Shown here: one piece after another, positions 7,360 to 62,183 of the stretch
Layout: every line of letters begins with the position of its first letter
How positions within the stretch are numbered: position 1 is the first letter of the stretch
Position numbers and translations under genes: made by a program
IMG/VR virus record: IMGVR_UViG_3300044568_003163
Location: 62,001-126,000 of that record
Direction: 5' to 3' (one strand)
DNA length: 64,000 nucleotides
Notes under the pieces: model-generated
Told to the model about the DNA's origin: nothing
Seen by the model: the letters and a program-made list of their open reading frames with translations, nothing else
Databases searched by the model: none

Positions 7360-7433
7360 TAGCGAGGACCGGGATCGAACCGGCGACCTTTGGTTTATGA
7401 ATCCAATGTTACTACCAACTGAACTACCTCGCC
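7360..7433 (-). tRNA. tRNA-Met(CAT), elongator
   Basis: Loop TTCATAA; GGCG acceptor. Confidence 0.8.
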
Positions 7434-7472
7434 AAATTGTAAGTTTTGAATGGACTTACAACCATTGATAGA

Positions 7473-7703: not shown

Positions 7704-7783
7704 AAGTTTTAGCTAAGCTAGACCTATGAGGAATTGTACGATTTTGTTGACATTTGATTTATATTTTTTTATTATATGTTCGA

Positions 7784-8230
7784 TTAAGCCAGAGATTCAA
7801 TAACCTCTTTTACTAATTTTGTATCGGCAAGACCTGGAAATTTCTTAACGAAAGCACCCATAGTCATACCTATTAATTTTTGTTTGTTTAATTCTAAAAC
7901 AGAACCGAGTAAAACATTAACTTCAGTTTCAATTTCAGCTCTAGTCATTTGCTTTGGCAAGTACTTTTCAATAACACCTAATTCATTAGCTTCAGATTCC
8001 ACTAAATCGAATCGACCAGCTTTTGTAAATTCTTCAATAGATTGTCTACGTTGTTTGATTGTAGAAATTACTGCATTTAGAACTAACTCATCAGTAAGTG
8101 GACCAGCATGCTTTGCCTTTTCAGCATCTTGGATTTTTGCCTTTAATCCACTTAATGCATTCTTCGCAATCGCGTTTTTCTCTTTGAATGCTACTATATA
8201 GTCAGCATTGATTGTTTCTCTTAAATTCAT
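7784..8230 (-). CDS. GatB/YqeY domain protein
   Basis: KQRRQSIEEF..AGRFDL..E..E..VIEKYLPKQM signature. Confidence 0.9.
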   Translation of the reverse strand: MNLRETINADYIVAFKEKNAIAKNALSGLKAKIQDAEKAKHAGPLTDELVLNAVISTIKQRRQSIEEFTKAGRFDLVESEANELGVIEKYLPKQMTRAEIETEVNVLLGSVLELNKQKLIGMTMGAFVKKFPGLADTKLVKEVIESLA

Positions 8231-8246
8231 CTTTACTAATTTTTAG

Positions 8247-8327
8247 TGGGCAACAGTGGACTCGAACCACTCCCGTGAGGACCAGATTTACAGTCTGGCT
8301 GCCGTATCCGAACGACTTTTGCGGCCC
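8247..8327 (-). tRNA. tRNA-Tyr(GTA)
   Basis: CCAGA-CTGTAAA-TCTGG; variable arm; atypical D arm. Confidence 0.8.
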
Positions 8328-8336
8328 ATTATATTG

Positions 8337-8410
8337 TGACTCCTCTGGGACTCGAACCCAGGACTCCCTCATTAAAAGTGAGGTGCTCTAGCCGACTGAG
8401 CTAAGAAGTC
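8337..8410 (-). tRNA. tRNA-Lys(TTT)
   Basis: CCTCA-CTTTTAA-TGAGG. Confidence 0.9.
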
Positions 8411-8420
8411 ATTGTAATAG

Positions 8421-8494
8421 CAGTCCTAACGGAATTCGAATCCGCAATCTCTTCCGTGACAGGGAAGCGTCATACGCCAATATGCTGTAGGACT
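8421..8494 (-). tRNA. tRNA-Asp(GTC)
   Basis: CTTCC-CTGTCAC-GGAAG. Confidence 0.8.
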
Positions 8495-8581
8495 ATATAA
8501 AAATTATTTAGTTTAAGCTCCTTTAAACCATGTAATTTCAGGGAGCTATTTGAGCTTATGCATGGAACTAAATAATAATTG

Positions 8582-8655
8582 CCGAGATGACGGGACTCGA
8601 ACCCGTGACCTTCGCCGTGACAGGGCGACATTGTAACCAACTCTACTACACCTCG
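8582..8655 (-). tRNA. tRNA-Asp(GTC)
   Basis: TCGCC-CTGTCAC-GGCGA. Confidence 0.85.
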
Positions 8656-8714
8656 ATTTCTAATTTCACGCTCACACTATGCAGTTCTATAAATTAGTAA
8701 CAGTCTCATCTGGG

Positions 8715-8788
8715 CTCTCCTGACTGGATTCGAACCAGTAACCCTCACCTTAACAGGGTGTCGCTCTAACCGTTGGAGCTACAGGAGA
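8715..8788 (-). tRNA. tRNA-Asn(GTT)
   Basis: CACC-CTGTTAA-GGTG. Confidence 0.85.
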
Positions 8789-8811
8789 ATATTTGATGTT
8801 TTAATTATAAG

Positions 8812-8869
8812 ACAAATATAAACAATGTCATTGACATATGAAAATATTTAATCAAATAGTTATTAACAA
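8812..8869 (-). promoter_or_regulatory. class I promoter cassette inside the tRNA array
   Basis: TATATTTG at 8813-8820, box at 8859; offset 46. Confidence 0.75.
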
Positions 8870-8873
8870 TTTG

Positions 8874-8945
8874 TGGAGCTACCGGGATTCGAACCCGGAA
8901 TAACAGAGTGCAAGTCTATCGTGATGCCAATTTCACTATAGCCCC
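8874..8945 (-). tRNA. tRNA-Ala(TGC)
   Basis: GGGGCTA acceptor with G3:U70; loop CTTGCAC. Confidence 0.9.
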
Positions 8946-8955
8946 ATTAAATTTG

Positions 8956-9030
8956 TAGGAGATGACGGAATCGAACCGACGACCTTTTGCGTGTAAAACA
9001 AACGCTCTAAACCAACTGAGCTAATCTCCT
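8956..9030 (-). tRNA. tRNA-Val(TAC)
   Basis: TTTGT-TTTACAC-GCAAA. Confidence 0.9.
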
Positions 9031-9036
9031 AAATTG

Positions 9037-9110
9037 TAGGTAATATGAGACTCGAACTCATAACCTCCTCGGTATCAGCGAGGTGCTCTAACCAATTGAG
9101 CTAACTACCT
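9037..9110 (-). tRNA. tRNA-Ile(GAT)
   Basis: CCTCG-CTGATAC-CGAGG. Confidence 0.9.
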
Positions 9111-9117
9111 GTGGCAG

Positions 9118-9188
9118 CACGAATGGAAGGATTCGAACCTTCATCGACGGTTTTGGAGACCGGCATGCTACCATTGCACCACACTCGT
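9118..9188 (-). tRNA. tRNA-Trp(CCA)
   Basis: CGGT-CTCCAAA-ACCG. Confidence 0.9.
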
Positions 9189-9195
9189 ATTTTAG

Positions 9196-9268
9196 TGGTA
9201 AGGGACGGGATCGAACCGTCATCATCGGATTTTCAGTCCGCTGCATAGACCAACTTTGCTACCTCACC
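9196..9268 (-). tRNA. tRNA-Phe(GAA)
   Basis: CGGA-CTGAAAA-TCCG. Confidence 0.9.
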
Positions 9269-9274
9269 AAAAAC

Positions 9275-9308
9275 AAAAAACCTCTGAATTTTTGAAGATT
9301 CAGAGGTT
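9275..9308 (-). terminator. attenuator terminator 3
   Basis: AACCTCTGAAT...ATTCAGAGGTTTTTT just upstream of tRNA-Phe. Confidence 0.85.
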
Positions 9309-9335
9309 AAAGTATATTGTATTAAAATATCGATA

Positions 9336-9434
9336 CTACATCCGAATCACATTGCTATCCACATAATCATTCCCGGCAAACTTAATCGCCCAGTCAAAAT
9401 TCATGTTAATATTTATGTTAGTAGTAGGTATCAT
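9336..9434 (-). CDS. putative attenuator leader peptide 3 (MIPTTNININMNFDWAIKFAGNDYVDSNVIRM)
   Basis: Lies between promoter and terminator; composition matches the downstream tRNA block. Confidence 0.75.
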   Translation of the reverse strand: MIPTTNININMNFDWAIKFAGNDYVDSNVIRM

Positions 9435-9469
9435 TTTATTGATGTTTTAATATTGTTTTATATATACTG

Positions 9470-9497
9470 TTATATGTTCTAAATTTCAAAAAGTTTC
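9470..9497 (-). promoter_or_regulatory. class II promoter GAAAC-N16-CATATAA
   Basis: Exact motif. Confidence 0.7.
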
Positions 9498-9526
9498 AAC
9501 TTATTTTTATATTATTTTAATCTTAG

Positions 9527-10090
9527 TTAGTCCCACCAAGAATCATATTCTTTAGCGAAGATTTCCATTGCTAAAGCAAAGTCTTTACTTCTATTCAAAT
9601 GAGCAATTTTCATACCCATTATGTATTCTTTGTTCTTTTTTCTCAGCTGAGCAGGTGTATATCGCTCATCATTCCTATCCATCAATCTGTGGCAATCTGG
9701 ACGATCTTCGCAAGGAATAGTATAGTAATCTGACTTACCCCATTTAGCGTCATGCTTTTCTCTATATGGCTCGTCGTAGTTATCTTCATGCACTTTCGTT
9801 AATAACTCTAAACATTCAGTCATCGTTCGAATTTGCTTTTCGCGATTCTCATCGACTGTATGGCCATGGTCTTTAACGTATTTGATATGAGCTTTCAACT
9901 TAAAAAGAATTGGTTCCATAATGTAATGGTTATCCCAATCTCTATCTCGCCATACAATAGGCATCCATCGAATTATATTCTTAATTCCTCTCACAAAATC
10001 CTTGGAAGGAATCTTGACGTATTCCTTCCAATAAAATTTTGCATTGTCTACCGCTTCTTCAACGTAGAACTTAATTCGTTCGTTTATCAT
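9527..10090 (-). CDS. conserved phage hypothetical protein
   Basis: W.DRDWD motif and terminal WWD seen in large phages. Confidence 0.65.
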   Translation of the reverse strand: MINERIKFYVEEAVDNAKFYWKEYVKIPSKDFVRGIKNIIRWMPIVWRDRDWDNHYIMEPILFKLKAHIKYVKDHGHTVDENREKQIRTMTECLELLTKVHEDNYDEPYREKHDAKWGKSDYYTIPCEDRPDCHRLMDRNDERYTPAQLRKKNKEYIMGMKIAHLNRSKDFALAMEIFAKEYDSWWD

Positions 10091-10104
10091 ATTGATGTTA
10101 TTGA

Positions 10105-11421
10105 TTAACCTTCAGCTTCTTCGGTATCAATTACTCCAGAATCTTTTACGATTCCTTCAAGTACTTTGAATTCGAAAGACTTGAATTTGAATGTTTTGTT
10201 TACCAAACCACCTTCAATTCTTACACAAACTCCTTCTTTGATATGTCTAGTATCTAAGATAGATGGACCAGTTCCGAATGTTTCGACGGTGTTGCTGAAA
10301 TATTCTCGCAAATCTCTATCATCGAATTTATGAGTGATTGCTTCTAATTCGTTTAAGGTTATCGTAGCAACATGTGGTACAGTTTTTACACCTAATTCAT
10401 TACAACGTTTTACAACATCATTCCAAGCATAATCGATAGATTGACCATCTTCATTAGCAAATGTCATACGGTAAACATAAACCTCAGATTGAGTAGGTTC
10501 ACAACCATAAGAATAAGCCATAGACTTACCGTATTGTTTCGTAAACTCTTTATCACCCATTTTGGTTGTATCAACAGATGGCATAATTGCAGCTCCTGTA
10601 GATTCGTAACCTACAATTTCAAAATAAACGGTTTCACCTTTTCTTAAGTTACCTTTGAATAAGTTCATTGCTTTATCTCGGATGGTTGGGTCATGGAATT
10701 GATTTGCGGATTTTGATTCTCCTAAAACAACTCTACGAGTACCATTCAAATAAGCCCATTCTTTGTCGTTGATAGCTAATCCAAATTTAGTAACAAGTTT
10801 TTCTAACCAACCTAATTCTCTAGTCATTTGAACGTGACCAATACGACCTGAAGTACCGTGAAGTTTTTCAGTAATAATGATGTGTTGACCCTTTTCAAAT
10901 TCGTGGATACTCTTACCAAAGTGTCCGGTATCAAAATGTTCTTTGAACATTACAGAAGATCTAGAAACTCGGGTTTTCTTACCTTGATTTTCTCTAGCAA
11001 TTTTAGCCGTATTTGGATTTACATATTTGTTACAGATAGGTACACCTTTCCATTCGTCAAATTCAAATCCTTCTACATCTAAACCAGTTACCATAATGAA
11101 TCCAAAGTAATGTAATGGAACCCAGAAACCATCAGAGATTTCACCTCTAAATTTTTGAGCTCTTACTCTTCGGTTTGCATCGAACATTCCACCTTTCTCA
11201 TCTTTTCTAGCATTTAACTCGGCATCACGATAAAGGTTGTTTGCTTTACAGAACTCATCGGATAACTGACCATCAGATGGAAAGTAAACTCCTAAATGTC
11301 CTTCTAAAGAATCTAAACCAATTACTACTTGATTACCGTGACAAGTTGCTAATTGAACTTTGTCTGCGTTAGGATGTGGTCTCACGTTTGTCAACCTAGT
11401 GACGATTGCATTGTATGCCAT
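10105..11421 (-). CDS. RNA ligase (DRB0094/Rnl2-like with N-terminal OB-like domain)
   Basis: HPNADK, TEKLHGTS adenylation motif, EGVCVR, FKFKS. Confidence 0.85.
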   Translation of the reverse strand: MAYNAIVTRLTNVRPHPNADKVQLATCHGNQVVIGLDSLEGHLGVYFPSDGQLSDEFCKANNLYRDAELNARKDEKGGMFDANRRVRAQKFRGEISDGFWVPLHYFGFIMVTGLDVEGFEFDEWKGVPICNKYVNPNTAKIARENQGKKTRVSRSSVMFKEHFDTGHFGKSIHEFEKGQHIIITEKLHGTSGRIGHVQMTRELGWLEKLVTKFGLAINDKEWAYLNGTRRVVLGESKSANQFHDPTIRDKAMNLFKGNLRKGETVYFEIVGYESTGAAIMPSVDTTKMGDKEFTKQYGKSMAYSYGCEPTQSEVYVYRMTFANEDGQSIDYAWNDVVKRCNELGVKTVPHVATITLNELEAITHKFDDRDLREYFSNTVETFGTGPSILDTRHIKEGVCVRIEGGLVNKTFKFKSFEFKVLEGIVKDSGVIDTEEAEG

Positions 11422-11445
11422 GATTTCGTATTTTTAATTTATAAG

Positions 11446-11503
11446 ACAAATATAATCAATGTCTTCGACACTTGAAAATAATTTCTCATTAAGTTATTAA
11501 CAA
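11446..11503 (-). promoter_or_regulatory. class I promoter cassette
   Basis: TATATTTG at 11447-11454, box at 11493; offset 46. Confidence 0.75.
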
Positions 11504-11507
11504 TTAG

Positions 11508-11618
11508 TAGTCAGAACAGGATTCGAACCTGTATGGTGTTACCTAGAGTACTCAATACAGAGCGGTAAATCGGTTACGAACCATTACTCTTAGCGTCTTC
11601 CAATTCCGCCACCTGACT
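11508..11618 (-). ncRNA. tRNA-like RNA (Leu-like D arm) with expanded anticodon domain
   Basis: Intact acceptor, D and T arms; AGAGTA/TACTCT stem encloses ~35 nt. Confidence 0.65.
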
Positions 11619-16064: not shown

Positions 16065-16096
16065 TAAAAAATGTTTTGACTAAAAGTTATTAACAA
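16039..16096 (-). promoter_or_regulatory. class I promoter cassette
   Basis: Box at 16086; offset 46. Confidence 0.75.
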
Positions 16097-16939: not shown

Positions 16940-17410
16940 TTAGGCAAGCATATGAAGATTAGTTCTCAAAGCTCCAATAGCAGCATCAAAGGTTTCAAAT
17001 ACCGGTATTCCTGCTCGTGAGCAAATAATATCTACATTACCTTTTCGCCAAAATCCGGTAGGACAACAGACAATTACACGTTGATGAATTGCAGCACATA
17101 CACCTAATTCCATTAATGTGATAGGACTTTTTGTGTCTGGTAAGATATTAAAGAATGCAATATCCGATTCAGTTAATTGAGTCAATTCCCAATTTACTTG
17201 ATGATTGAATTCTGGATTACTTTCCTTTTGTTCCCATGAAGAATCCCAATCATCTCTTCGAGGATTTAAGAAAGTAACATCTTCGTCTTTAAAGATTTCA
17301 GTGATTGCAGTTTGCCAATCTTCGGCAACTCCCATTTCAATGGAACCAGCTAAAAATACGCTGGTTCCATCTATGATTTGGTCTGATGAATTTGGTTTAA
17401 TTACTTGCAT
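16940..17410 (-). CDS. nucleoside 2-deoxyribosyltransferase-like protein
   Basis: VFLAGSI, NPRR, QVNWEL, SPITLMELG. Confidence 0.85.
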   Translation of the reverse strand: MQVIKPNSSDQIIDGTSVFLAGSIEMGVAEDWQTAITEIFKDEDVTFLNPRRDDWDSSWEQKESNPEFNHQVNWELTQLTESDIAFFNILPDTKSPITLMELGVCAAIHQRVIVCCPTGFWRKGNVDIICSRAGIPVFETFDAAIGALRTNLHMLA

Positions 17411-18932
17411 TAGACAATTCCATTACTTTAGCTCGGATAGCTGTTAATGTTGTTCGATTATAGAATTTTCCATTTTCATAAATCGTTTGTAAGATACCCA
17501 TATCTTCTTCAGTGTCGTTACATTGAGTTTGAACTACATAAGTTCCATCAACTTCAACAACTGCACATTTACCCTTTAATGACTTTTTAGTACCATCATC
17601 GGTAATTGGATCTTTAAAGATATCGTAACCTACTCCATTTGCCTCAAACCAAGCACCTTTTGCAGCATAACCGAAAGTATCACGAGTTGTAAATTGATAT
17701 GTGAATGAACCTACACCTAATACAATATTCGTTGAAGCAAATCCTTTAGCTTCTAATCTTTCGTAGATTTGGATTTGTCTTTCTAGATTAATTGAGTCTC
17801 CGTAGATAGCACCAATATGTGGATCTAGAACTTTATAACCTTGTTCGTTGATTGTACCACCAAAGATATCCCAAAGTAATTCAATAACACCTTTAAATTC
17901 TGGCACATAAACATCTTCATCAATTTCTTCGGCAGTTAAAAGTTTATCACCTGATTGGTACATTCCTCTTCCGCAAATAATATCTACCGGATCACCTGAA
18001 TCAGGACGAATAACCAATTTACCGTCACGTGACATGATTTGCTCTTTGTTTGCAGGCAAATACTCAGTAATCAATTTCCATAAGTCGAATGTGTCAGCCA
18101 CAATAGAAAGTATTCCTTTATCAAATTCAGTTAACCAATCAGAAATCATTTGTTGTTCACCTACCGTAAAGATTTTAGTAGTTGATACTGAGTGCTCAGA
18201 AGCATTTACTGAATTGATACAAACTTCGTTTTCTGGTTCGTCATAAAAATAACGAGCACCTGGAATAACTATGATTGAGTCAGATCCTCGGAATGAGAAT
18301 GCATGACCTAATCCAGAAGATAAACTATCCCATGGAGAAAGTCCTCTGGCAGAAAAATCATGACATAAGAAGTCGATTAACCAAGCATTTGCAGGATCAG
18401 TTTTCATTACCCATTTAACAAGGTTTCTACGGTATTGTAATGCATAAGTTGCAGATGTAGCTGGTTTCCAAGCTAAAGAAGAGATAATAGTTTCTAAGTA
18501 CAATGTCAACCAAGCAAAACCTTTAACAGTATTGATGAATGTCATATGAGGTACATTAGGATCAGTTTCAATTCCTTCTGGAAGAGCTTTGATACGAATA
18601 GGTAAGTAACCTAAATCATGGAGTGATTCAAAGTGCGAAGCATCGTAAGGCATACCTAAATATTGAGACATATCCACTCCAAATTGAGTAGCTGTTTCTT
18701 TTGGCATGTCGAAGAAATTTTCTTGCCATTCTGCATGCAACCAACTTACCGTTAATTGATGTCCAACCGAAAGAATTTTATTAACACCTTTTGGTGCATG
18801 TTTTAAACTTCTAGGAATCCAAGTTCCATATAAGAAATCTGTACCAGGAGCAAGCATCCTTTTATGGCCGACTTTGTAACCATCAGAATAAAAAGGAGCA
18901 GGTGCTCGAAATGTTTTTTGTAGTTTTAACAT
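17397..18932 (-). CDS. nadV: nicotinamide phosphoribosyltransferase-like (NAMPT/Namat)
   Basis: DGYKVGH, HDFSARG, ASEHS, IRPDSGDP, IYGDSI, KKSLKG. Confidence 0.9.
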   Translation of the reverse strand: MLKLQKTFRAPAPFYSDGYKVGHKRMLAPGTDFLYGTWIPRSLKHAPKGVNKILSVGHQLTVSWLHAEWQENFFDMPKETATQFGVDMSQYLGMPYDASHFESLHDLGYLPIRIKALPEGIETDPNVPHMTFINTVKGFAWLTLYLETIISSLAWKPATSATYALQYRRNLVKWVMKTDPANAWLIDFLCHDFSARGLSPWDSLSSGLGHAFSFRGSDSIIVIPGARYFYDEPENEVCINSVNASEHSVSTTKIFTVGEQQMISDWLTEFDKGILSIVADTFDLWKLITEYLPANKEQIMSRDGKLVIRPDSGDPVDIICGRGMYQSGDKLLTAEEIDEDVYVPEFKGVIELLWDIFGGTINEQGYKVLDPHIGAIYGDSINLERQIQIYERLEAKGFASTNIVLGVGSFTYQFTTRDTFGYAAKGAWFEANGVGYDIFKDPITDDGTKKSLKGKCAVVEVDGTYVVQTQCNDTEEDMGILQTIYENGKFYNRTTLTAIRAKVMELSNASN

Positions 18933-33721: not shown

Positions 33722-34879
33722 TTATATTACCCACCAGTTTGCGTTATCTGAAACTAAAGTAATTGATTCATATATTTTGTTTATTACTGCAGTAAGTCCA
33801 TCATCTATCGTTTGAGTAGAAAATGCATCAACAGTAATTGGTGGAGTACCATCTATTTTTTTAATTACTAATGTTGAAGTATTATCAATTGCAGTAGGTA
33901 GATTAACTTGAAAAGCTCCTCCAGAAGTATTACATTTTAAAATAAAGGTTCCTGCAGTTGCACTTATATTATATGTAGTAGATGCAGAATCAATTACATA
34001 ACCGCTAACACCTCCTGTTCCAGCAGGACCGGTAGCACCTTGAGGACCAGTAGCACCAACTGGACCGGTTATACCAATTCCGGTAGCTCCATTAAGACCA
34101 TCGTTTCCAGTAGGTCCAGTAGGTCCATTAAGGCCAGTAGGTCCAGTTTGACCTACTCCAGTAGCACCAGTAATTCCGATAAGACCAGTAGCACCGATAG
34201 GACCTTGAAGTCCAGTAGCACCAGTTTGTCCATTATTACCAGTAGGACCTTGAAGTCCAGTAGCACCAGTAGGACCTTGAAGTCCAGTAGCACCAGTAGG
34301 ACCTTGAAGTCCAGTAGCACCAGTTTGTCCATTATTACCGGTAGAACCTTGAATTCCAGTAGAACCAGTTTGTCCATCGTTTCCAGTAGGACCTATTCCA
34401 CCAGTCATTCCAATAGCTCCAGTTTGTCCATCATTTCCGGTAGCACCTTGAAGGCCATTGTTTCCGGTAGGACCAGTAGCTCCGGCTACACCAGGATTTC
34501 CTGTAGCACCAGTAGCTCCAATTTGACCATCATTTCCTGTAGCACCAGTAAGACCGATTTGACCATCATTTCCAGTAGGACCGGTAGGTCCAGTTACACC
34601 TGCACCGGTTGGACCGATTTGTCCATTATTTCCAGTAGGACCGGTAGGTCCTTGAATTCCAGTAGCTCCGGTTTCACCAGCACCAGTAGAACCAGTAGCA
34701 CCTTTATTTCCGTCTACCCCTGTAGGACCGGTAGCTCCTGTTTGACCTCTACTTGCTTGTAAAGTTATAGGATTACCGAGTCCATCATAATAATTTCCGT
34801 TTCCGTCTGTTTGTAAAAGATTACCAAAAGAGTTTGATACGAACTGATTGGTTAAATCAAAATCTTGATTTTGTGGCAT
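33722..34879 (-). CDS. collagen-like (Gly-X-Y) fibre protein
   Basis: About 245 aa of GPT/GAT/GQT repeats plus a C-terminal domain. Confidence 0.9.
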
Positions 34880-37960: not shown

Positions 37961-39886
37961 TTATTTTAATTTGATTTTCATTTGTGTGCCTATCTCTGGC
38001 AGTTTATTACATTTAATGGTAAAGCCATGTTCACTTAAAATTGCAATACATATATTAAGGCCTAATCCGGTTCCTGATTCTGCTTGTCCTTCTTTCCTTA
38101 CATACGGTTTAGATAGATAATCGAAATCTGCTTGACTTAATCCTCTACCGTTATCTTCAATAAAGAGAGTATCTTCAACTCGATAAATTTTAACAAATTT
38201 ACTATTACTGTCATTGTATTTCAATCCATTACGAATAAGATTATCAATTGATGTACAAAATAAGGCTTCATTAACATCCAATTCTCCTAAGTCTTCTAAA
38301 ATTACTTGAGGTCGATATGCAGTTGCAGAAAGATAATCCTCTAATATAAGCTTAAGATTGCAATTAACTCGATCAAGTACAACATCCTTCTTTACCAAAT
38401 TTGTAAATTCATAAACTCCTTTATAAACTTTTTGAGTGTGTCGCAGACCTTCTTTAATCATCTTAAGAGGTGCTTCAATCTTCAACTCTTTTATTTGTTC
38501 TTCCGTGAGTCTACGTTCTAACGAAGATAAACCTCGAGGCATATATGTGTTAATTCCACTATGCATATCATGTCGAAGAATTTTAGCAGCATGTTCAAGA
38601 TAAGTGTTTTTCTTTTCAATCTCTATCTGCTGATTATAGCTTTGAGTAACATCAGTAGCAATTTTCATTATTCGATAAGGTTTACCATCAATACCAATAA
38701 CCGGATTATAAGTTGCTTGTAGATAAATTAAATTTCCATCTTTTTTCTTTCTGATAATTTCTCCACTAAAGAATTTTCCTGTTCGTAGAGTTTCCCAAAA
38801 TTTTTGATATTCATTTGATTCGACAAATTCATCCTCTACGAATATGCTATGATGTTTACCTACGATTTCTTCGAATTTATCGTATCCCATAGTATTTAAG
38901 AAAAGTGAATTAGCAAATATTATATTACCTCCTAAGTCGAATTCAATAACCGCATTAGATTGATTAATTGCAGTCATTCTATTATGTATTTCGTTCTCTT
39001 TGTTTTTTAATTGAGTAACATCTTGTCGGATAGACATAAATCCTAATATGGTTCCGTCATCGTCGAAATTGCACTTTATAAAAGTATCTACATAATACAA
39101 TGAGCCATTTTTTGCTCGGTTTGTACAGATAGCATTCCAAATTTTCTTTTCTTTGACTACTGTCCTATACATATCAGACCAAAATTCCTTAGGATGTTCA
39201 CCTGAATTTACAACATTATGGTCAAGGCCTATCACTTCATCTATCGTATATCCAGAAATATCACAAAACTTTTGATTTACATATGTTATCTTTCCTTTAG
39301 AATCAGCCATTGAAATGATTGCTGATGTATCGAGAAATTTTTCTAGTTCTATCATTTGACTCGATAACTTTTTAGATTCTTTAACAGAATAAGCAAATGA
39401 ATACAGAGACGAAAGTATTTGAGCAAAATGAATTTCCTCAGTTTTCCATATTCTAGGGGATAGACTTTCAATACAAATAACCCCAATCAACGATCCACTA
39501 TACCAAATTGGTACATCTAACATCGATTTAACACCCAGAGGTTTTAGATAACCTTCAAGAAAACACGATGTGGCAGGATGATTTTCTGCATCATTAGCAA
39601 CAATGATTGGATTTTCTTCCAGTGATAAAAAATATGATTCGAAATCTTTTTTATGTAAAATAATATCTTGATAAAAGGCATCTTCTAATTTTATATAAAG
39701 TTGTTGAAGGATGATAGAATCTCGGTCCTCGTTAAACAACCATATAGATGTTCGATCAGCTGAAACACTATCTACAACTTCCTTAACCACCAATTTAGCT
39801 CCTTCCATAATATTACCTTTATAAAATAATTCATTTGAAGATTGATGTACTAATACCTCAGTTAAAATTTCTGAGTATGATTTCAT
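37961..39886 (-). CDS. cytoplasmic GAF-PAS-PAS sensor histidine kinase
   Basis: GAF (SMLDVPI), two PAS/PAC, H-box RHDM, NLIRNGLKY, EDNGRG, GTGLGL. Confidence 0.9.
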   Translation of the reverse strand: MKSYSEILTEVLVHQSSNELFYKGNIMEGAKLVVKEVVDSVSADRTSIWLFNEDRDSIILQQLYIKLEDAFYQDIILHKKDFESYFLSLEENPIIVANDAENHPATSCFLEGYLKPLGVKSMLDVPIWYSGSLIGVICIESLSPRIWKTEEIHFAQILSSLYSFAYSVKESKKLSSQMIELEKFLDTSAIISMADSKGKITYVNQKFCDISGYTIDEVIGLDHNVVNSGEHPKEFWSDMYRTVVKEKKIWNAICTNRAKNGSLYYVDTFIKCNFDDDGTILGFMSIRQDVTQLKNKENEIHNRMTAINQSNAVIEFDLGGNIIFANSLFLNTMGYDKFEEIVGKHHSIFVEDEFVESNEYQKFWETLRTGKFFSGEIIRKKKDGNLIYLQATYNPVIGIDGKPYRIMKIATDVTQSYNQQIEIEKKNTYLEHAAKILRHDMHSGINTYMPRGLSSLERRLTEEQIKELKIEAPLKMIKEGLRHTQKVYKGVYEFTNLVKKDVVLDRVNCNLKLILEDYLSATAYRPQVILEDLGELDVNEALFCTSIDNLIRNGLKYNDSNSKFVKIYRVEDTLFIEDNGRGLSQADFDYLSKPYVRKEGQAESGTGLGLNICIAILSEHGFTIKCNKLPEIGTQMKIKLK

Positions 39887-53805: not shown

Positions 53806-54141
53806 CTATTTAGGTGACCATTCTTTTTTGTCAAAATCTTCGATGTTTAACATGGCTTGTATCGACTTTTCAAAATGAATATTTACTCGACCCCAAAAAA
53901 ATCCAGTAGTAGGAGCAAATTCCGTATTCCAAAATTTACGATCTCTCAATCTATCCAAACAATCTTTTGTAACTCCTTTTGGATCGTCATAGACGATATT
54001 AAGATAGCCATTTACATCCTCAGTTCTAAACTTAATTTTACTAGAAAATCCATGTAAAGCTTGTAAGATGTCAATTAAATCATTTGCAGTTCCTCTACCT
54101 TCATTTAAGAAAGTTTCTAGTGATTCGTGTAATGAGCTCAT
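53806..54141 (-). CDS. CTS-like-peptide hypothetical protein
   Basis: MSSLHESLETFLNE. Confidence 0.6.
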   Translation of the reverse strand: MSSLHESLETFLNEGRGTANDLIDILQALHGFSSKIKFRTEDVNGYLNIVYDDPKGVTKDCLDRLRDRKFWNTEFAPTTGFFWGRVNIHFEKSIQAMLNIEDFDKKEWSPK

Positions 54142-54635
54142 TATTTGATGTATTTTTTTCTAATAATTTCCTCAGCCTTTTCAATCTCTTTCGGAGACCA
54201 ACCATAGAGCTTACCTATCTCGGTGGCAACCTCTAATGGGTCGTCTGAAGTCTTAAATTGATTGATGTGCATTTTAATGGTTGCATCATTTACCGGTTGT
54301 TTGCTCTCATTTAAGAAGGCTTCAAAGCTTTCCATAAGATTACTTGATTCGCTCACTTCTGCTTCATATACAGTTCCTATTACATCACTAGCATTACTAA
54401 ATTTCTTAATGTGACTACTCACATCCTTTAGCTTTTTGATAATAGCATCTAATTCTTTAGGGTCAACATCATTACCGGAAGTAACTCGATCGGTAAATAC
54501 ATTTAACTTTATGCGAGCTACGAATAGTTCGGTTTTGACTACATCTTTCGGTAATCGATAGAAAGTTCCTTCGTTCATAATATTATTTCTTGCTCCAAAG
54601 TAAATCTGAAAAATCCGAGTACATGTACTTGTCAA
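54141..54635 (-). CDS. multi-segment hypothetical protein
   Basis: Likely start MNEG near 54578; internal LMESFEAFLNE. Confidence 0.6.
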   Translation of the reverse strand: MTSTCTRIFQIYFGARNNIMNEGTFYRLPKDVVKTELFVARIKLNVFTDRVTSGNDVDPKELDAIIKKLKDVSSHIKKFSNASDVIGTVYEAEVSESSNLMESFEAFLNESKQPVNDATIKMHINQFKTSDDPLEVATEIGKLYGWSPKEIEKAEEIIRKKYIK

Positions 54636-55223: not shown

Positions 55224-55592
55224 CTATTTCCCAGTTTTCTTCAAGTCCTGAGGCCCCGAGGAGGCTTTTTCCGCAGCCAACACCTCAACGGCACTAATCA
55301 AATCGACGACCTCTTGACAGTCCTCGTATTCCTCCTCTTCTACTCGATGGTCTAAAATCTTACCTAAAGCCGTAATAGCATCAGTCAATCGGATAGACAC
55401 CCATACTGACGAATAAGTTTCAATACACCAGATTTCCAAACACATATCGGTCGTACTCCGGAATTCTAACATCCGCTTACACCCGAGTACAATTTGACTA
55501 TGAATAAATGATTTATCTTTAATAGCATTCTCCACTTCATCCAATGTCTTACAATAGAGACGAGTCCACTTTTGTTCCTTAGTTATAACCAT
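55224..55592 (-). CDS. hypothetical protein with UVR-like tail
   Basis: EEEYEDC. Confidence 0.55.
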   Translation of the reverse strand: MVITKEQKWTRLYCKTLDEVENAIKDKSFIHSQIVLGCKRMLEFRSTTDMCLEIWCIETYSSVWVSIRLTDAITALGKILDHRVEEEEYEDCQEVVDLISAVEVLAAEKASSGPQDLKKTGK

Positions 55593-55715: not shown

Positions 55716-56096
55716 TTAAGATGAGCAAGCGGTGTAGTACATGATACAAATAACAACCGCATGTAAGAATTGGTCGAATCCAAATAAAATCCAATGCCAT
55801 TTAGAGGCTGGAGATTGTACAATTGGAAACCATACATTCATCCGACCTTTCCATAAGTCAATCAGAAAATGCGATAACAATTGAAACATAACCAAATTAA
55901 ACCAAAGGGCGAAGGTCATCTGACCAAATGCTAATACAATAGCCATGAGGGTAGCATGAACGGCAGCATGGGCAAAGATAGGGAGTAGAGGCTTACCGAC
56001 AGCTTTAGCATTAAGCATCCAAGAGGTCGATAACCAAGTAAAGTCAGCTAAAAAGTGACAGAAGAAGAGGGCAATAAGTAAGTAGCAATTATCCAT
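55716..56096 (-). CDS. DUF3307-family membrane protein
   Basis: HFLADF, H...H, SHFLID..K, DQFLH. Confidence 0.85.
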   Translation of the reverse strand: MDNCYLLIALFFCHFLADFTWLSTSWMLNAKAVGKPLLPIFAHAAVHATLMAIVLAFGQMTFALWFNLVMFQLLSHFLIDLWKGRMNVWFPIVQSPASKWHWILFGFDQFLHAVVICIMYYTACSS

Positions 56097-56116
56097 AGAG
56101 TATTAATTTATAGTAA

Positions 56117-56144
56117 TTATATGAAGGCGCCGCGGATGAGTTTC
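56117..56144 (-). promoter_or_regulatory. class II promoter GAAAC-N16-CATATAA
   Basis: Exact motif, 20 nt upstream of the DUF3307 start. Confidence 0.7.
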
Positions 56145-56149
56145 GAGGG

Positions 56150-57075
56150 CCACTCGAATTCCCTGAAAAAAATTTTATGACAGTGATTTTAGGCCGAAAG
56201 TTTAACCAGTGTTAGGGTTGGGCTTTAGCCGGCCACAGATCTATTTCCAGAGCGAAAAGTGCCTGGAATTGCATGCCCACAGGGCCCGGCACAAATCCTC
56301 CGCGTCATTAACGCAACTCAGGGATCCTATGACCTGAGGCCTTTCTAGCTTCTCAAAAAGTCACCTCGGGAAAAGTTGATAGCTAGGTCACTTTCTCCAC
56401 TCTCTTCGACCTCGAGCTCTCTTAGGCTACTCGCCACCTTCTCTACCCTAATCCTCCCTTCTACTCCCTCAAGGTGTAGCACCTCTACTCTCCTACCCTA
56501 CTTCTACTCTTAAGGCTACCTACCTCTCTACCCCTCTACTCTCTTAGACCTTCCTCTACTAGCTACTACACTCTTATTGCCTATTTGCCTTTCTACTACG
56601 CTACGCTTACTCTATAAAGAGAGCCTACCTATACGTATGTAATGCACTCTATACGAGAGCCTCTATCTAGTGTGTAGTGTTAGGTAGTTATAACAGGTGA
56701 AGGTGGCAAGGGTAGGGAGTGATGTAGGAGTACGTACACTAGGGTGGTGGTAGAGCCTCGCTACCCTACGAGTGTTGTGGACTGGTAAGGTTAGAAGGCT
56801 GCTGACTGGTACGTACCTGAGTGGCTACCTGTCTGGTACGTGTCTGAGGTGACTGCCAGGGTCAACCTGGGTGGTCCTAGACAGTCCCTGGGATGACCTA
56901 GGAGTGGTCCTGGAGGTACGTACCTGGAGTACGTGTCTAGAAGTGGTCCTAGAGTGGTCCCTGGAGAAAGTTAATATATGGCCGTCTCGGAATGAACCTG
57001 GAGAAAGCCACTAAACCCCTCAAAGGCCATATATATTTGACTATATATGGCCTAAGATTCGATCAAATTAAAAAA
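56150..57075. other. GC-rich non-coding region with a strand-skew switch
   Basis: No ORF of 60 aa or more; C/T-rich half then G-rich half; short repeats. Confidence 0.7.
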
Positions 57076-57079
57076 TCAC

Positions 57080-58168
57080 TTAGAATGGTTGATTTAGGAC
57101 CAAATTAGCGGTATCAAAGTTTTTGGCAAGTATATCACCTGCAACCATTTGTAAGTGTGTATCAGAATTGGCTTTTTTCTCAAAGCCATAATTATGTGAT
57201 GCGAAATCAGTTACTCCATTAATGACATCCCATACTGAAACTCCTGTTCTTAGATTAGCCTTTTGTTTGGCATTTAACTTAGTAGTATCTAAATTAGCAC
57301 CATGTATTCTATTATATGTGTTTTTATGGCCTTTGAAAAACATCTCTAACTCATTTTGTTGGATATTAGAGTTATTAAGGAGTAAATTAGCACCTTGCTC
57401 TAGCTCTAATAGTGAGGCAGGAGTATTAATAGCTTCAATAACCTTTTGGTTAAATGCGGTAGGTACGAAATTCATTTTTTCGATACGTTCCATATGCTCA
57501 TAAAATTCTTGCCATGTTCTTGCATCCATACTACGAAGATTGAAGGACTCATCGAATGCTCTTAAGACATTACCATTTGTACATACTAGACGGTCCATAT
57601 AAGGGTCAGCCTGGAGTCCATTTGCCGTTCTGGCCAAAGATATACCAGTTTGAAATACCTCATTGGATAGGTTTTCCACTTGGTGTTGATTACCTTGACC
57701 ATTAATTGCTCTTATATAGATATTACCATTTCCTTTATTGAAATCGGTTGAGGTAATTTCCAAATTATGAGTATTGGCTAGACGTTCGAAAGTATCAAAG
57801 TATGTTTCAGCAGAGATAATGGCTGAAGCACCTTCTTTTTGTATACGTGAGATAATACGATCGGGTGTAACTGCTATAGTTACTTGCATAGACTTGTTTT
57901 GGCCAATTGCATTTTTTAGGGAATTTAAAAACATTTGAGCTCCATCTTCACCTACTGATGAGGTAAGATTTTTTAATCCAGTTGAGGAGAATCCTACTAT
58001 CTGAAGTAAGTCTTTAATAGCTTGTCGGTCGACTCCTAATTTTAGACCATTGAATTCTACTAGGTCCATAGTAATAAATCTTAAATCCGTAAGAGCAATA
58101 GTTTTTCTTAGGGGTTGATTGCGTAGGCTGGTTTCTTTGAAATTAGCGTACTGTGCTTGTGATATCAT
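57080..58168 (-). CDS. DUF932/DUF945-like protein
   Basis: RLVCTNG and WDVINGVT motifs. Confidence 0.7.
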   Translation of the reverse strand: MISQAQYANFKETSLRNQPLRKTIALTDLRFITMDLVEFNGLKLGVDRQAIKDLLQIVGFSSTGLKNLTSSVGEDGAQMFLNSLKNAIGQNKSMQVTIAVTPDRIISRIQKEGASAIISAETYFDTFERLANTHNLEITSTDFNKGNGNIYIRAINGQGNQHQVENLSNEVFQTGISLARTANGLQADPYMDRLVCTNGNVLRAFDESFNLRSMDARTWQEFYEHMERIEKMNFVPTAFNQKVIEAINTPASLLELEQGANLLLNNSNIQQNELEMFFKGHKNTYNRIHGANLDTTKLNAKQKANLRTGVSVWDVINGVTDFASHNYGFEKKANSDTHLQMVAGDILAKNFDTANLVLNQPF

Positions 58169-58209
58169 ATTGAATGAATTTTTTTGTGTCCTGATGGACT
58201 AGTTATGTA

Positions 58210-58485
58210 TTACAGTTTCGGTGCTTCAACTTTGGTACTTGGTTTTAACTTAATAAAGTAGGATGTTTCCATCGTAGATACTCTAATAGATTTCTGACCA
58301 TTTGTTTCGTCAAATACAACTGCTTTTACCGCTTCATATCCTTTGCATAAGTCTCTTACAAGGCCGATTGCAATGATAGGTTCTTTCGCATTGTTTTGAA
58401 CCAATTGTTTGATTTTGAAATACTGATCTTTTCTTAAACGGTTAGTTACTGGAACCTCATCGTTAACACTTTCTGGTCTTGCCAT
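58210..58485 (-). CDS. hypothetical protein
   Basis: ORF track. Confidence 0.6.
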   Translation of the reverse strand: MARPESVNDEVPVTNRLRKDQYFKIKQLVQNNAKEPIIAIGLVRDLCKGYEAVKAVVFDETNGQKSIRVSTMETSYFIKLKPSTKVEAPKL

Positions 58486-58524
58486 AGTTTTCTTATTTTA
58501 TATGATTAATTTGATAATTAGTTT

Positions 58525-58788
58525 TTAGTAAAAGTAGCCATTGTGAACAATTTGTATAGCTTGTTCGTATTGTTGACCGACTTTTTCTTGTCCTTCTGAA
58601 CCTAAGTAAGAAGGAGTAATTTCTAAGATGCATGTTCCTTTAACAGTATCGATACTCACTAACTTTGACCTTAAGGTAGCAGAATGATTATCTGGACCGA
58701 TTTTTCCTATTACGGATTGAAGGTCGTAAGCCATTCTGTTAATAGTTTGTTGTTGGTACTCAGCGAATTTTGAATCGGACATAAACAT
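58525..58788 (-). CDS. hypothetical protein
   Basis: Has its own class I promoter at 58810-58877 (offset 56). Confidence 0.6.
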   Translation of the reverse strand: MFMSDSKFAEYQQQTINRMAYDLQSVIGKIGPDNHSATLRSKLVSIDTVKGTCILEITPSYLGSEGQEKVGQQYEQAIQIVHNGYFY

Positions 58789-58981
58789 AATATGTGTTTT
58801 TAATTATAAGTAAATCTAATCATTTTAGGCGAAACTAGGAAATGATTTGTGCATTATTTTCAAAAAGTTATTAACAATTGAGAGGTGTAGCATATCGATT
58901 TAATGCTCTTAATATTTACTCGGTGAGCACCTCTCAATGTTAATTATCAGTTTACATATTGTAAGTGTTGAGGTTTACAAA

Positions 58982-59272
58982 TTATTTCACTAAGAACCTT
59001 GAAGCTCCAGTTCTTCTTGACTCAACGATTTCAGATAAAATGTTTTTGGTATTTACCACTTGTACGTAGTTTTTTCTAGCGTATAATTGAACAAATACTT
59101 TTCTAGACATATTAATGGTTTTCTCAACGATTGCGTTGGTAGTAGTCATTTGGATTGCATTTTCGTTTAAGGCAGTAATCTCGAAAATGTTGTTAGCACC
59201 ATTACGGATAATTTGACCTTTTGCAATTGTAGCGTTGATTGTTGTTTCTGAGGTAGTGTTGATTGTTGTCAT
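58982..59272 (-). CDS. hypothetical protein
   Basis: Has its own promoter near 59300. Confidence 0.6.
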   Translation of the reverse strand: MTTINTTSETTINATIAKGQIIRNGANNIFEITALNENAIQMTTTNAIVEKTINMSRKVFVQLYARKNYVQVVNTKNILSEIVESRRTGASRFLVK

Positions 59273-59470
59273 AATGAATAAGTTGTTGTTTTTAATTATA
59301 AGTAAATCTAATCATTATTGGCGATACTTGAAAATAAAAACTGTTAAATTTTTGTTAAAGTTTTGAAACTTTTTTGGTCAGCCAGATTATCAAAAGGCAG
59401 GTAATAACACTAGCTATTACAAAGCCTAAGAATAAGCCCATGACCTGGATGGCTATAGTAAATGGATCCA

Positions 59471-59845
59471 TTAGTAGAAAAGAGATAAAAGGTTATTGTA
59501 ATCCGCAGGAGTAGACACTCTAAATGTCTTCATATCTGGTACACAAGTTCCTTTATAATCATCAGTACTGTACTTAGCTTTTGCAAGTTCCATTGCCTCT
59601 TCTTTAGTGTGAGCATATTCACTGTTCCAACCTCCACCTTCAAAGTTAAATAAGAATTCGTATTTAGCTGAGGTAGCCTTTTCTAATTGGTTGATGACGT
59701 CTTGATTTTCAGCCATTTGCTCGAGAATTTCGTTTTCCATTACATCAGATAATTCCATTACATTACACATAGCGTGCATATTAATGTTACGATTCTTAAG
59801 GATAATAATTCTTTCTAAAGCTGATTGTCTCTGTGCTTGTGTCAT
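59471..59845 (-). CDS. hypothetical protein
   Basis: ORF track. Confidence 0.6.
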   Translation of the reverse strand: MTQAQRQSALERIIILKNRNINMHAMCNVMELSDVMENEILEQMAENQDVINQLEKATSAKYEFLFNFEGGGWNSEYAHTKEEAMELAKAKYSTDDYKGTCVPDMKTFRVSTPADYNNLLSLFY

Positions 59846-59969
59846 GATTATTTTATTTTGTTAAAGGTTTTATATAGTCGAAAAAAACTCGTTTTTAAGG
59901 AAATTCTTTGATTGATATTCAAATTACCGTGAATGGTATAAAAATGCTTTAATGCCATAATGTATATTA

Positions 59970-60320
59970 TTAGTTAATGAATGATCCGTTTTCGTCGATT
60001 AGGTTTAGGTTATCTAGAGTCTCATAACCAAGAGGAGTAATGTGCATGGTTCCATAAGCATCGGGAGACCAATAAGGATTACGGGTTTTGTTTCCGTCCT
60101 TGTCGATGTTAAATTTTTTCTCACCTTCTTGGATATTGACAAGACCTTTAGTAGATAGTGAAGCGAAAACTCCACCTCTTTTACTTTTAGGTATTGAACA
60201 GGCATCGTACACTGAGAAATCCCATAAGATAGATTCTCGTCCATTTTCATAGAAATCCGAGTAAGTAATAGATTTCAGAGCAAGTAGCTCGAGGTCGGTA
60301 AGGGTGATTGGAGTTGTCAT
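59970..60320 (-). CDS. winged-helix-like small protein
   Basis: GVFASL..KGLV...IT..G pattern; own promoter at 60344-60411 (offset 56). Confidence 0.5.
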   Translation of the reverse strand: MTTPITLTDLELLALKSITYSDFYENGRESILWDFSVYDACSIPKSKRGGVFASLSTKGLVNIQEGEKKFNIDKDGNKTRNPYWSPDAYGTMHITPLGYETLDNLNLIDENGSFIN

Positions 60321-60744
60321 AACGTATTGTTTTAATTTGATAAGTAAAACTAATCATTTTAGGCGACAAATGGAAATGTTTCGGCAACTATTTTTAGAAA
60401 GTTATTAACAATTTAGAGTGGCCGAAGTTGTGAAAAACCAGGTAGTAGACTAGCTGATGTTGTACTAGGGTTGATAAAAGCCACAAAAAGCCAGACGGGA
60501 GTCTAGCTGGGTGTATAAAGGTGAATCGGATTTCGCTTCGCCGGTATTGTGGGTGAGCCATTAGGCCTTTCTGGTATTGGAGTACTTTGCATTTTATTGA
60601 CGACGGCGAGTATCGAACGAGCTCATCTATTACATTTTTGTCTGCTCGGTGGACTAGGAGTAATAATCTTTCATTGAAATGCTCCTCCTCGCACGGGTGC
60701 ACGATAGGCACACATGTGCTGGAGTGGCTTACTTACTCGCTACC

Positions 60745-60969
60745 CTACTGCATGTTTCTAAAATCATCATCATTAGGTCCTTCTATTAGGATTCTTATTA
60801 CATGATATACGAATAGGCAGATAGCTATAGGCCATAATAAGATGAGATTGATACGTTCACTATTAGACTTGATTTGATATTCTTGTATAGCTGTAGACTT
60901 TAATATAAGTTCTGCTATGATAGAGACTATTGAGCCTATTACTAGATAGATGGAGATGTTGTATAACAT
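60745..60969 (-). CDS. 2-TM membrane protein
   Basis: Two hydrophobic segments; LLWP. Confidence 0.6.
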   Translation of the reverse strand: MLYNISIYLVIGSIVSIIAELILKSTAIQEYQIKSNSERINLILLWPIAICLFVYHVIRILIEGPNDDDFRNMQ

Positions 60970-61018
60970 TTTTATTATTTAGTGGTGGTAGGAATTTTTA
61001 TTTTGTGGCGAACGGTCG

Positions 61019-61480
61019 CTAGGATGACTTGGTAGCCGCGTTCCTGGAGAGCATTTCGTTGATAATTTTAACTTCGACTTGATGGTGGATGCTCTTCTTG
61101 TATTTAGTCGTTGACCATTTATGAGAACGGTCAACAAAGATGATTGGATTTGGTAGCTCCTTACCGGTAAATGGTTGATCGATATAATCGTCACCTAAAA
61201 ACCGGACTGATGTTGGATTGTCCTTCATCCAATTGAGAAATCCTTCTTCGGTATGATAAACTCCTATCTGGTCAACGGATCTCAATTCTAATAAGATAAC
61301 AGCTCTCTCTTCGACTGAGAGTACAGGTGCTAATTTATGAGGTCTTTCTGCGGATGGGTCGACATGTATTAAGACAACGAGTTTTTCGCAATGTGCTTTC
61401 GCATCGCCAAATAACTTAATGTAACCAGGATGTATCACATCAAAGGCACCGGCTACAAAGCCTACTTCGTATTTTTTCAT
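61019..61480 (-). CDS. cytidylyltransferase-like (TagD/RfaE family)
   Basis: GAFDVIHPGY, EER, GDDY, STT. Confidence 0.85.
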   Translation of the reverse strand: MKKYEVGFVAGAFDVIHPGYIKLFGDAKAHCEKLVVLIHVDPSAERPHKLAPVLSVEERAVILLELRSVDQIGVYHTEEGFLNWMKDNPTSVRFLGDDYIDQPFTGKELPNPIIFVDRSHKWSTTKYKKSIHHQVEVKIINEMLSRNAATKSS

Positions 61481-61683
61481 AGATTTCTAGCTTTTAACAT
61501 GGCATCGGCTATCTTATAGCTTTCTGCGGCTCGGCTATCGTAGTTTGTTAACACTGAGCCATATTTTGCAGTAAATCCTTGCATTGCGGCTGCCGCAAAA
61601 TAATCTCTTAAGGACATGCCAGAATATTCTTCTTGTACAGTATCAGCTGGAAATGCGTTAGGGTTAGGTGGTTTTGTTTCCAT
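61477..61683 (-). CDS. conserved phage protein
   Basis: GMSLRDYFAA.AMQ...ADAML motif. Confidence 0.75.
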   Translation of the reverse strand: METKPPNPNAFPADTVQEEYSGMSLRDYFAAAAMQGFTAKYGSVLTNYDSRAAESYKIADAMLKARNL

Positions 61684-61970
61684 TAAAATTTAATTTGATT
61701 GTTAGTAAATAGCTTTTCAGTTTGTCGAACGATGGCTTCTTCATAAGTTTCTTCTCGGTCCTTCTTCCACCATTTCGTATGTTTAACCATTTCTCGTTTA
61801 ACGATGTTTTCGTCACCTCGTTGTTCGGTTTCTAATGCGCCAAAGTTGACAAGTCCAGCTTCTAAATAGCCTAAATGTGCATATAGAGCAGGAGTGCCCA
61901 TATGGTCTCTTTTGGTTTTGAGTGTATTATAGCAATATTGCAAGTGGCTGAGAGTAAGTTTATTCTCCAT
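61683..61970 (-). CDS. hypothetical protein
   Basis: ORF track. Confidence 0.55.
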   Translation of the reverse strand: MENKLTLSHLQYCYNTLKTKRDHMGTPALYAHLGYLEAGLVNFGALETEQRGDENIVKREMVKHTKWWKKDREETYEEAIVRQTEKLFTNNQIKF

Positions 61971-61973
61971 AAT

Positions 61974-62183
61974 TTATTTCTTGTTAGCGGGTTCGAATGT
62001 TGACGTATACCAATTTTTGTCGTATAAACCTTTTGGCCATTCTTTTGATTCGATTACAACACCTTGAAATTCTTTACTCGAGTAGTTGCAGGTAGTTTCA
62101 GTACACATAATTATAGTGTTACCTGATTTGTTTGTGTATAATTCTCCTTTTAGGAAAACTTTTCTTTCTATAAAATCTTCCAT
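61974..62183 (-). CDS. hypothetical protein
   Basis: ORF track. Confidence 0.55.
   Translation of the reverse strand: MEDFIERKVFLKGELYTNKSGNTIIMCTETTCNYSSKEFQGVVIESKEWPKGLYDKNWYTSTFEPANKK

Follow-up and report, generated by a model that had tools for sequence, protein, structure and literature searches.

The gap between two called genes at positions 56097-57079 of the window, the 64,000-nt stretch of DNA analysed here, is occupied by a single-copy element that has a conserved anatomy and is devoid of coding capacity and of conserved RNA structure. It is likely to be a protein-binding element of double-stranded DNA. The leading reading of its function, which we hold tentatively and at slightly less than an even chance, is that of a replication origin of the iteron type, similar to T4 oriE or to the iteron origins of plasmids. 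A literature search found no description of such an element, which represents an already known kind in the form of a new sequence family. The positions of its parts and of the flanking genes are given in Table 1.

Table 1. Parts of the element and genes flanking it, in window coordinates
Feature	Position	Strand	Remark
10-mer TTAATTTGAT, opening the element	57062-57071	−	9-mer core TAATTTGAT
Perfect hairpin, 12-bp stem and 6-nt loop	57024-57053	−	Terminator position of relatives; T run weak in this phage
Third ATATATGGCC copy	56974-56983	+	
Distal repeat array, G-rich on the + strand	56690-56965	+	Eight RGTGG sites
Switch point between the opposed arrays	56621-56689		GC skew about 0
Proximal repeat array, G/A-rich on the − strand	56390-56620	−	Eight GTAGAR units, two RGTGG sites
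Fixed-length conserved core, about 80 nt	56234-56316	−	One copy in the genome
Conserved A/T tract, then CAG (AAAATTTTTTYCAG type)	56163-56176	−	Longer form unique in the genome
Outgoing promoter, GAAAC-N16-CATATAAT class	56116-56144	−	Genome holds six exact copies, each on the coding strand
Upstream flank: divergent DUF932-like gene, 362 aa	57080-58168	−	Linked to the element in every relative found
Downstream flank: DUF3307 membrane-protein gene	55716-56096	−	Absent from relatives
122-aa gene	55224-55592	−	Homologue directly after the element in relatives

The window comprises bases 62001-126000 of a 294,034-bp IMG/VR virus record, which is classed as linear and about 91% complete. The genome has a GC content of 33%, carries nearly all of its genes on the − strand, and codes for a T4-type major capsid protein, a family-B DNA polymerase, a DnaB-type helicase and a large terminase. 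The polymerase gene appears to be split, matching two separate ORFs about 5 kb apart and outside the window (genome positions 263493-264221 and 269181-269567). Among 50,697 deposited phage records, neither blastn nor megablast found a match to the DNA. Judging from the T4-type gene set and the lack of any DNA-level match among deposited phages, the source is an uncultured T4-like jumbo phage. The window also contains a cluster of 35-37 tRNA genes (1592-11618, −), in which ARAGORN called a tRNA with a four-base anticodon (2044-2116) and Rfam gave two long tRNA-like hits absent from the ARAGORN output (3604-3700 and 11508-11618, the latter of 111 nt). Other products encoded in the window include an RNA ligase (10105-11421, −), a protein of the nicotinate phosphoribosyltransferase family (17397-18932, −) and a 641-aa GAF/PAS/HATPase histidine-kinase-like protein (37961-39886, −).

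An earlier note, made from the sequence alone, had described a non-coding region of about 0.9 kb with a GC content above the genome background, and both descriptions held. The gap is 983 nt long, and its longest standard ORF has 47 aa. No hidden gene was found under read-through of a single stop codon, the longest stop-free run being 169 codons; a gene hidden behind any one stop codon was therefore rejected for want of a long open frame in the gap. Nothing suggests an alternative genetic code, since table 11 leaves the flanking genes intact. Of all GC-rich islands in the 294,034-bp genome the gap ranks first: its richest 300 nt reach 0.55, the genome mean being 0.328 and the sd 0.037. The second GC-rich island, which is unrelated to the element, is a 385-aa ORF of collagen-like G-X-Y repeats (33722-34879, −). 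Two further IMG/VR assemblies are 100% identical over 12.9 kb spanning the region, which disposes of the assembly artefact that the earlier note had kept in view.

The same note had reported a mirror skew switch, and this is the sharpest local switch in the genome. The left part (56390-56620) has a GC skew of −0.65, is 73% pyrimidine and contains the genome-wide minimum over all 230-nt windows, and the right part (56690-56965) has a GC skew of +0.32 (top 0.16% genome-wide). The contrast between left and right belongs to the top 0.0024% of positions and differs by less than 0.03 from the genome maximum, located 2 nt away. The switch consists of two G-rich repeat arrays on opposite strands, those of the right half lying on the + strand and those of the left half on the − strand. 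On the other hand, the whole-genome cumulative GC skew, which had been proposed as a check on an origin or genome end, fell steadily over all 294 kb with no turning point at the element. A blip of +115 was seen there against an overall trend of −6,577, and a comparable blip occurred at 48-54 kb; the turning-point test is weak in this phage, whose genes are nearly all on one strand. The 5-kb block to the right of the element (window 57001-62000) has a positive GC skew though its ORFs lie on the − strand, as elsewhere, and this block accounts for a small local minimum of the cumulative skew at the element. For genome scanning, it follows that opposed repeat arrays can produce an extreme local skew switch, and that such a switch is not necessarily the sign of a replication turning point.

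The repeats reported in the two halves were borne out. CTAC occurs 21 times in the region against 3.4 copies expected from the genome rate, in agreement with the C/T-rich, CTAC-bearing left part described before. The G-rich right part holds, on the + strand, four RGTGGTCC copies (among its eight RGTGG sites) in units such as CTAGRAGTGGTCC, together with three palindrome-like GGTACGTRYC units. Four of the nine genome copies of GTGGTCC/GGACCAC lie in the element, within 91 bp, and all genome copies of GTACGTAC are confined to it. RGTGG-type sites number 12 in the 983 nt compared with 2.1 per kb in the flanks; in the window their spacing is irregular (11-50 nt), and the GTAGAR units of the proximal array are 8-37 nt apart. 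Two direct GAGAGCCT / TATACG units were found at the switch point. Repeated 8-mers amounted to 56, against 12.1 ± 4.4 in 300 shuffles, whereas inverted 8-mers barely exceeded the shuffles (z about 1.5-2). The halves, which had been called loosely complementary, are therefore so in composition; in sequence they are not, as the folding values given below (z −0.65 to −2.4) also indicate. As had been stated, ATATATGGCC occurs three times in alternating orientation (56974-56983, +; 57025-57034, −; 57043-57052, +), and these are its only copies in the genome. Two of them make up the hairpin at 57024-57053, and the third could pair with the copy at 57025-57034, replacing the terminator stem.

The core begins with CGTTAAYG, and sCCATG starts at a distance of exactly 36 nt from the first base; TTCCRG comes next, then a T tract and finally a CTCGAAAC-like box. 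A search of the whole genome with the core by nhmmer gave a single match (E 5.8e-13). The pure A/T tract that follows is only about 12-14 bp long and could serve as an unwinding or bending element. The promoter is read from 56144 to 56116 and fires away from the arrays, into the next gene; no motif of either of the two recognised promoter classes of the phage is aimed into the arrays. The promoter region at 56097-56125 is AT-rich, as is the whole genome.

In order to compare the element among relatives, their contigs were gathered by exact protein look-up, by a protein pattern and, separately, by a core DNA pattern. One contig labelled as human-gut metagenome (L055) was excluded from every comparison as a precaution. 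The place of the element is conserved in 15 distinct relatives; their flanking protein shares 46-70% identity with that of the window. All 15 carry an ORF-less, GC-elevated gap in the same place, between the DUF932-like gene and the homologue of the 122-aa gene, with a length of 476-1000 nt where it was measured from called genes. Six relatives found by the DNA pattern alone also have a DUF932-like gene linked to the element, and the gap is absent next to homologues that are more remote (33-35% identical). In the orientation of the genes (−), the common order is TTAATTTGAT with the terminator, a variable stretch, the core, the A/T tract (AAAATTTTTTCCAG type), the promoter and the next gene. 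The 9-mer TAATTTGAT was present in 8 of the 11 relatives with upstream sequence, 4-10 nt ahead of the terminator hairpin, which in relatives is a canonical terminator with a T run.

The core alignment, about 80 columns long, contains hardly any indels, and 14 of its positions are invariant. Core and promoter are separated by about 130 to 560 nt. Translation of a small peptide from the ATG of the core was ruled out, since 5 of 16 sequences have 1-nt indels and L012 has no ATG. Within IMG/VR (2.9 million viral contigs), the core pattern was found only in this lineage and in three clearly unrelated sequences; its 37 matches in 185,579 prokaryote genomes were all chance-like. Among the metagenome matches of the pattern, about 80 of 90 were also due to chance and were removed by requiring extra motifs.

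The variable stretch, which has a length of between about 80 and about 760 nt, defies alignment between relatives and is nearly missing in three of them (L089, L011 and L007). Between two relatives that are 95% identical (L005 and L006), a segment downstream of the core has been replaced within the element. Short contigs of five relatives (L036, L046, L050, L084 and L085) end 90-300 nt beyond the core, at differing positions, so that the region seems to be a hot spot of assembly breaks; tandem repeats (L011 and L007) and the segment swap between L005 and L006 are the likely causes. In two relatives (L007 and L008, scaffolds of 307-326 kb), a 192-aa, weakly GIY-YIG-like ORF (6132-6710) separates the DUF932-like gene from the beginning of the element, which is consistent with the insertion of a homing endonuclease.

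When 6-mers of ten elements were compared with their flanks, AGTGGG was the most enriched (29-fold), and GTGGGT (12-fold), GACTAG (12-fold) and GAGTGG (8-fold) were also enriched. GAGTGG is repeated within 8 of the 10 elements. Alignment of the repeat instances gave a motif close to yTAGAGTGGkyC, which occurs 4-13 times per element in the array-bearing relatives, in both orientations, and of which AGTGGTCC, AGTGGGTC and AGTGGC are variants among the elements. CTAG was enriched about 4-fold in the elements, and no enrichment of GATC or GANTC, as in Dam- or CcrM-controlled origins, was found. Sites near the core mostly face it and more distant sites often face the opposite way; judged from these orientations, the mirror layout recurs at least in L005 and L012. 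Chi-like protective arrays were rejected, because the relatives differ in how their repeats are oriented. A weight matrix built from the relatives only was used to scan the whole genome of the phage and gave 44 sites; the densest 1-kb window was this element, with 5 of the 44.

A 10-bp periodicity of A/T tracts was detected in the 130 bp upstream of the core, with a pooled power of 1.82 compared with 0.26 ± 0.07 in coding controls. The phasing was strong in 9 of 16 sequences, and the copy of the window itself is without phased tracts (power 0.24). Helical phasing is a property of duplex DNA and marks curved DNA. With this phasing on the one side, and with neither an RNA family match nor a predicted RNA structure on the other, the element is best read as a site at which double-stranded DNA is bound by protein.

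The earlier note had placed a DUF932 gene next to the region. The assignment stands in a weakened form, as a distant relationship suggested by sequence comparison: the 362-aa protein gave no DUF932 match in Pfam at E 0.01, but one homologue (37% identity) carries PF06067 and the nearest Atlas clusters are 15-23% DUF932. The protein has 111 homologues in marine and freshwater metagenomes, and tblastn against phage records gave one match (27% identical), in an unannotated 484-kb uncultured phage. Its AlphaFold model (pLDDT 81) had no Foldseek match at E <= 0.001. Several resemblances to OB folds were seen for residues 19-115 of the model, with VIA Z values of 5-6.2, which are below the noise level of 8 of the tool; this faint resemblance is a lead and not a finding. 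The literature search yielded nothing on the function of DUF932. The model of the 122-aa protein (pLDDT 90) likewise gave no Foldseek match at E <= 0.001, and the VIA Z values of both proteins were all below 8. As relatives have no DUF3307 gene at this place, that gene is probably a lineage-specific insertion. No initiator, HTH or Rep family and no ParA/ParB/TubZ-type gene was recognised among the scanned neighbours, which are ORFans. About 1.5 kb from the element, a 164-aa ORF (window 54141-54635, −) contains a borderline phage-integrase SAM-like DNA-binding domain (22.2 bits against a cut-off of 22.3).

The small genes to the right of the element carry repeated promoter cassettes, which agrees with the run of small, promoter-bearing genes reported there. 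TTGTTAATAAC occurs 13 times in the window, always on the − strand, against 0.11 expected copies; its positions include 58867-58877, 60401-60411 and 16086-16096 and ten more, and repeats lie at 58795-58843 and 59287-59335. It is often located between a terminator hairpin and a TATAAT-type box upstream of small genes, and these sites look like composite promoter-terminator cassettes of the PeSL type, which have been reported in T4-like phages (PMC2839356, PMC4122927). The element resembles them in being bracketed by a terminator and a promoter, in a genome in which PeSL-like cassettes are abundant; however, those cassettes are short and multi-copy, whereas the element is about 980 bp long, single-copy and equipped with a core of its own.

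The element is thus a single-copy, lineage-specific unit that probably acts as double-stranded DNA, bounded by the terminator of the DUF932-like gene on one side and by the next operon's promoter on the other. Its three parts are the opposed arrays of iteron-like repeats (yTAGRAGTGGkyC / GTAGAG type), the A/T tract, and the core of about 80 bp, whose length is invariant. The repeats and the core may be bound by a protein of the phage or of the host, which would bend or wrap the DNA; in an origin, the strands would then open at the neighbouring A/T-rich tract and promoter region. The origin reading is the best fit to the single copy number, the conserved core, the lineage-specific repeats, the DNA curvature indicated in relatives, the A/T tract and the promoter. 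It was already among the suggestions of the earlier note; the skew on which it then leaned has fallen away, and the reading now leads by virtue of the synteny, the invariant core, the iteron-like repeats and the phased A/T tracts of relatives. Against it stand the missing skew turning point, the lack of a recognisable initiator nearby, the irregular spacing of the repeats, the short A/T tract and the unphased copy of the window. In addition, the replication genes lie about 140 kb from the element, and the iteron role of T4 oriE is itself unproven.

Among known origins, the closest likeness is to T4 oriE, in which 12-nt iterons are clustered; the cluster, of unproven role, has been conserved in the syntenic regions of related phages (PMC3016281). 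Both belong to T4-type phages, consist of clustered short repeats (about 12 nt in oriE), are conserved in synteny, and are read as initiator-binding sites by analogy with plasmid origins (PMC3016281). The repeats of oriE are, however, evenly spaced and direct, whereas those of the element are irregular and in both orientations, and the element adds the core of about 80 bp and the A/T tract. With R6K gamma and lambda ori it shares repeated initiator-type sites and a single copy, and it may share bent DNA, as the tract phasing of relatives suggests, and an A/T-rich neighbouring stretch; no recognisable Rep or O-type initiator gene is adjacent. No DnaA or IHF site was noticed in the element on a cursory look, and an unwinding element does not stand out because the background genome is already AT-rich. 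The R-loop origins oriF and oriG of T4 are resembled in that a phage promoter is part of the element and that a − strand transcript of the left half, 73% purine and G-rich, would favour an R-loop if it were made. In contrast to those origins, the only recognisable promoter of the element faces away from the arrays, and a terminator precedes them.

A different possibility, which we consider unlikely but worth keeping, is control of transcription of the downstream operon, in which an operator- or enhancer-like array would be bound by a phage regulator at the repeats and at GAAAC-type boxes so as to set the timing of expression, with no role in replication. The genuine GAAAC-N16-CATATAAT promoter at the end of the element is in favour of this, as is the CTCGAAAC box in the core of relatives, which resembles the −35-side box of that promoter class and is sometimes present in 2-3 copies. 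Phased A/T tracts are also common upstream of promoters. However, the arrays lie 100-800 nt upstream of the promoter, and with the variable distance of the core (about 130-560 nt) this would be unusual for an operator. No regulator gene was recognised nearby, and no −10 element was found after the CTCGAAAC-type boxes of the core.

It is improbable that the variable part is a fast-evolving, functionless slippage spacer between the terminator and a small functional core with its promoter. Such a spacer would agree with a stretch that is unalignable, varies in length between about 80 and about 760 nt and is nearly missing in three relatives, and with the segment replaced downstream of the core between the 95%-identical L005 and L006. 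Nevertheless, the same AGTGG-type and CTAG motifs recur in the otherwise unalignable arrays of most relatives, and the matrix from relatives singles out the array of the window itself. Furthermore, the GC content stays far above background, although in a genome of 33% GC such an excess would be expected to decay under neutral drift.

A more specific proposal, likewise improbable at present, is that the element is an origin or a centromere-like site for which the DUF932-like protein acts as the repeat-binding initiator, the repeats and the protein co-evolving in each lineage. This proposal is based on the linkage of the gene to the element in every relative and on the faint N-terminal resemblance to an OB fold.

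Very unlikely is one or more non-coding RNA genes, such as a long structured or protein-sponging RNA. GOLLD and ROOL are large ornate RNAs of 0.6-0.9 kb that are GC-rich and occur in phage genomes with tRNA clusters, and the element, too, is a GC-rich non-coding stretch in a phage with a tRNA cluster. Its high GC content in an AT-rich genome, in which the other GC-rich islands are mostly tRNA genes, would suit an RNA gene. In addition, the whole 981 nt folds better than shuffled sequences (z −4.4 on the + strand and −3.4 on the − strand; only 20 shuffles), a hairpin at 56186-56240 uses G-U pairs that exist on the + strand only, and GGA and UAG motifs abound in the left half on the − strand. 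In contrast to GOLLD and ROOL, however, the region had no match in Rfam 15 at either the gathering threshold or E 10, and neither conserved secondary structure nor a folding excess was found. RNAalifold gave 0 conserved pairs for 16 aligned cores, and the mean folding z of the core was +0.27 and −0.11 for the two strands (14 sequences) and about −0.2 downstream of it; a conserved RNA structure in the core was ruled out on this basis. For the skewed part of 596 nt, comparison with whole-sequence and 60-nt-block shuffles gave z values between −0.65 and −1.2 for the + strand and between −2.0 and −2.4 for the − strand. The skewed halves thus fold no better than shuffles, and the giant RNA or ssDNA hairpin suggested by the earlier note was discarded. 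The lack of phage promoter motifs directed into the arrays and the duplex nature of the A-tract phase also argue against an RNA gene.

A centromere-like or DNA-organising site, that is, an array for a partition, condensation or nucleoid protein, appears still more doubtful. The many short repeats in both orientations, the single copy and the associated curved DNA speak for such a site, but no partition gene of the types named above was recognised among the scanned neighbours. T4-like phages are lytic, and since this phage looks T4-like, partition would be of no obvious use to it.

A packaging site (pac or cos) or a physical genome terminus, also among the earlier suggestions, is the least probable reading of all. 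The pac sites of SPP1 and P1 contain repeated boxes and bent DNA, features that the element combines with a single copy number, and the five short contigs of relatives stop soon after the core. Nevertheless, at least seven contigs of 100-326 kb run through the element, the ends of the short contigs differ in position, the large terminase gene is 105 kb away, and capsid and terminase are of the T4 type, whose phages package by headful without a fixed end (PMC3016281, Figure 1 legend).

The origins of T4-like and jumbo phages are poorly defined, and the element described here is sharply bounded, present in a single copy and conserved. Its 80-bp core can be retrieved from metagenomes by a simple DNA pattern. 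If the DUF932-like protein were the initiator, this would be the first function for DUF932-type proteins of phages and plasmids, and the two would form a new origin-initiator pair in T4-like jumbo phages. For the DUF932-like and the 122-aa proteins, which represent two conserved ORFan families, the element offers a partner that can be tested, and it may provide a handle on the start of replication, or on a DNA-organising protein, in an aquatic lineage of phages of about 300 kb.
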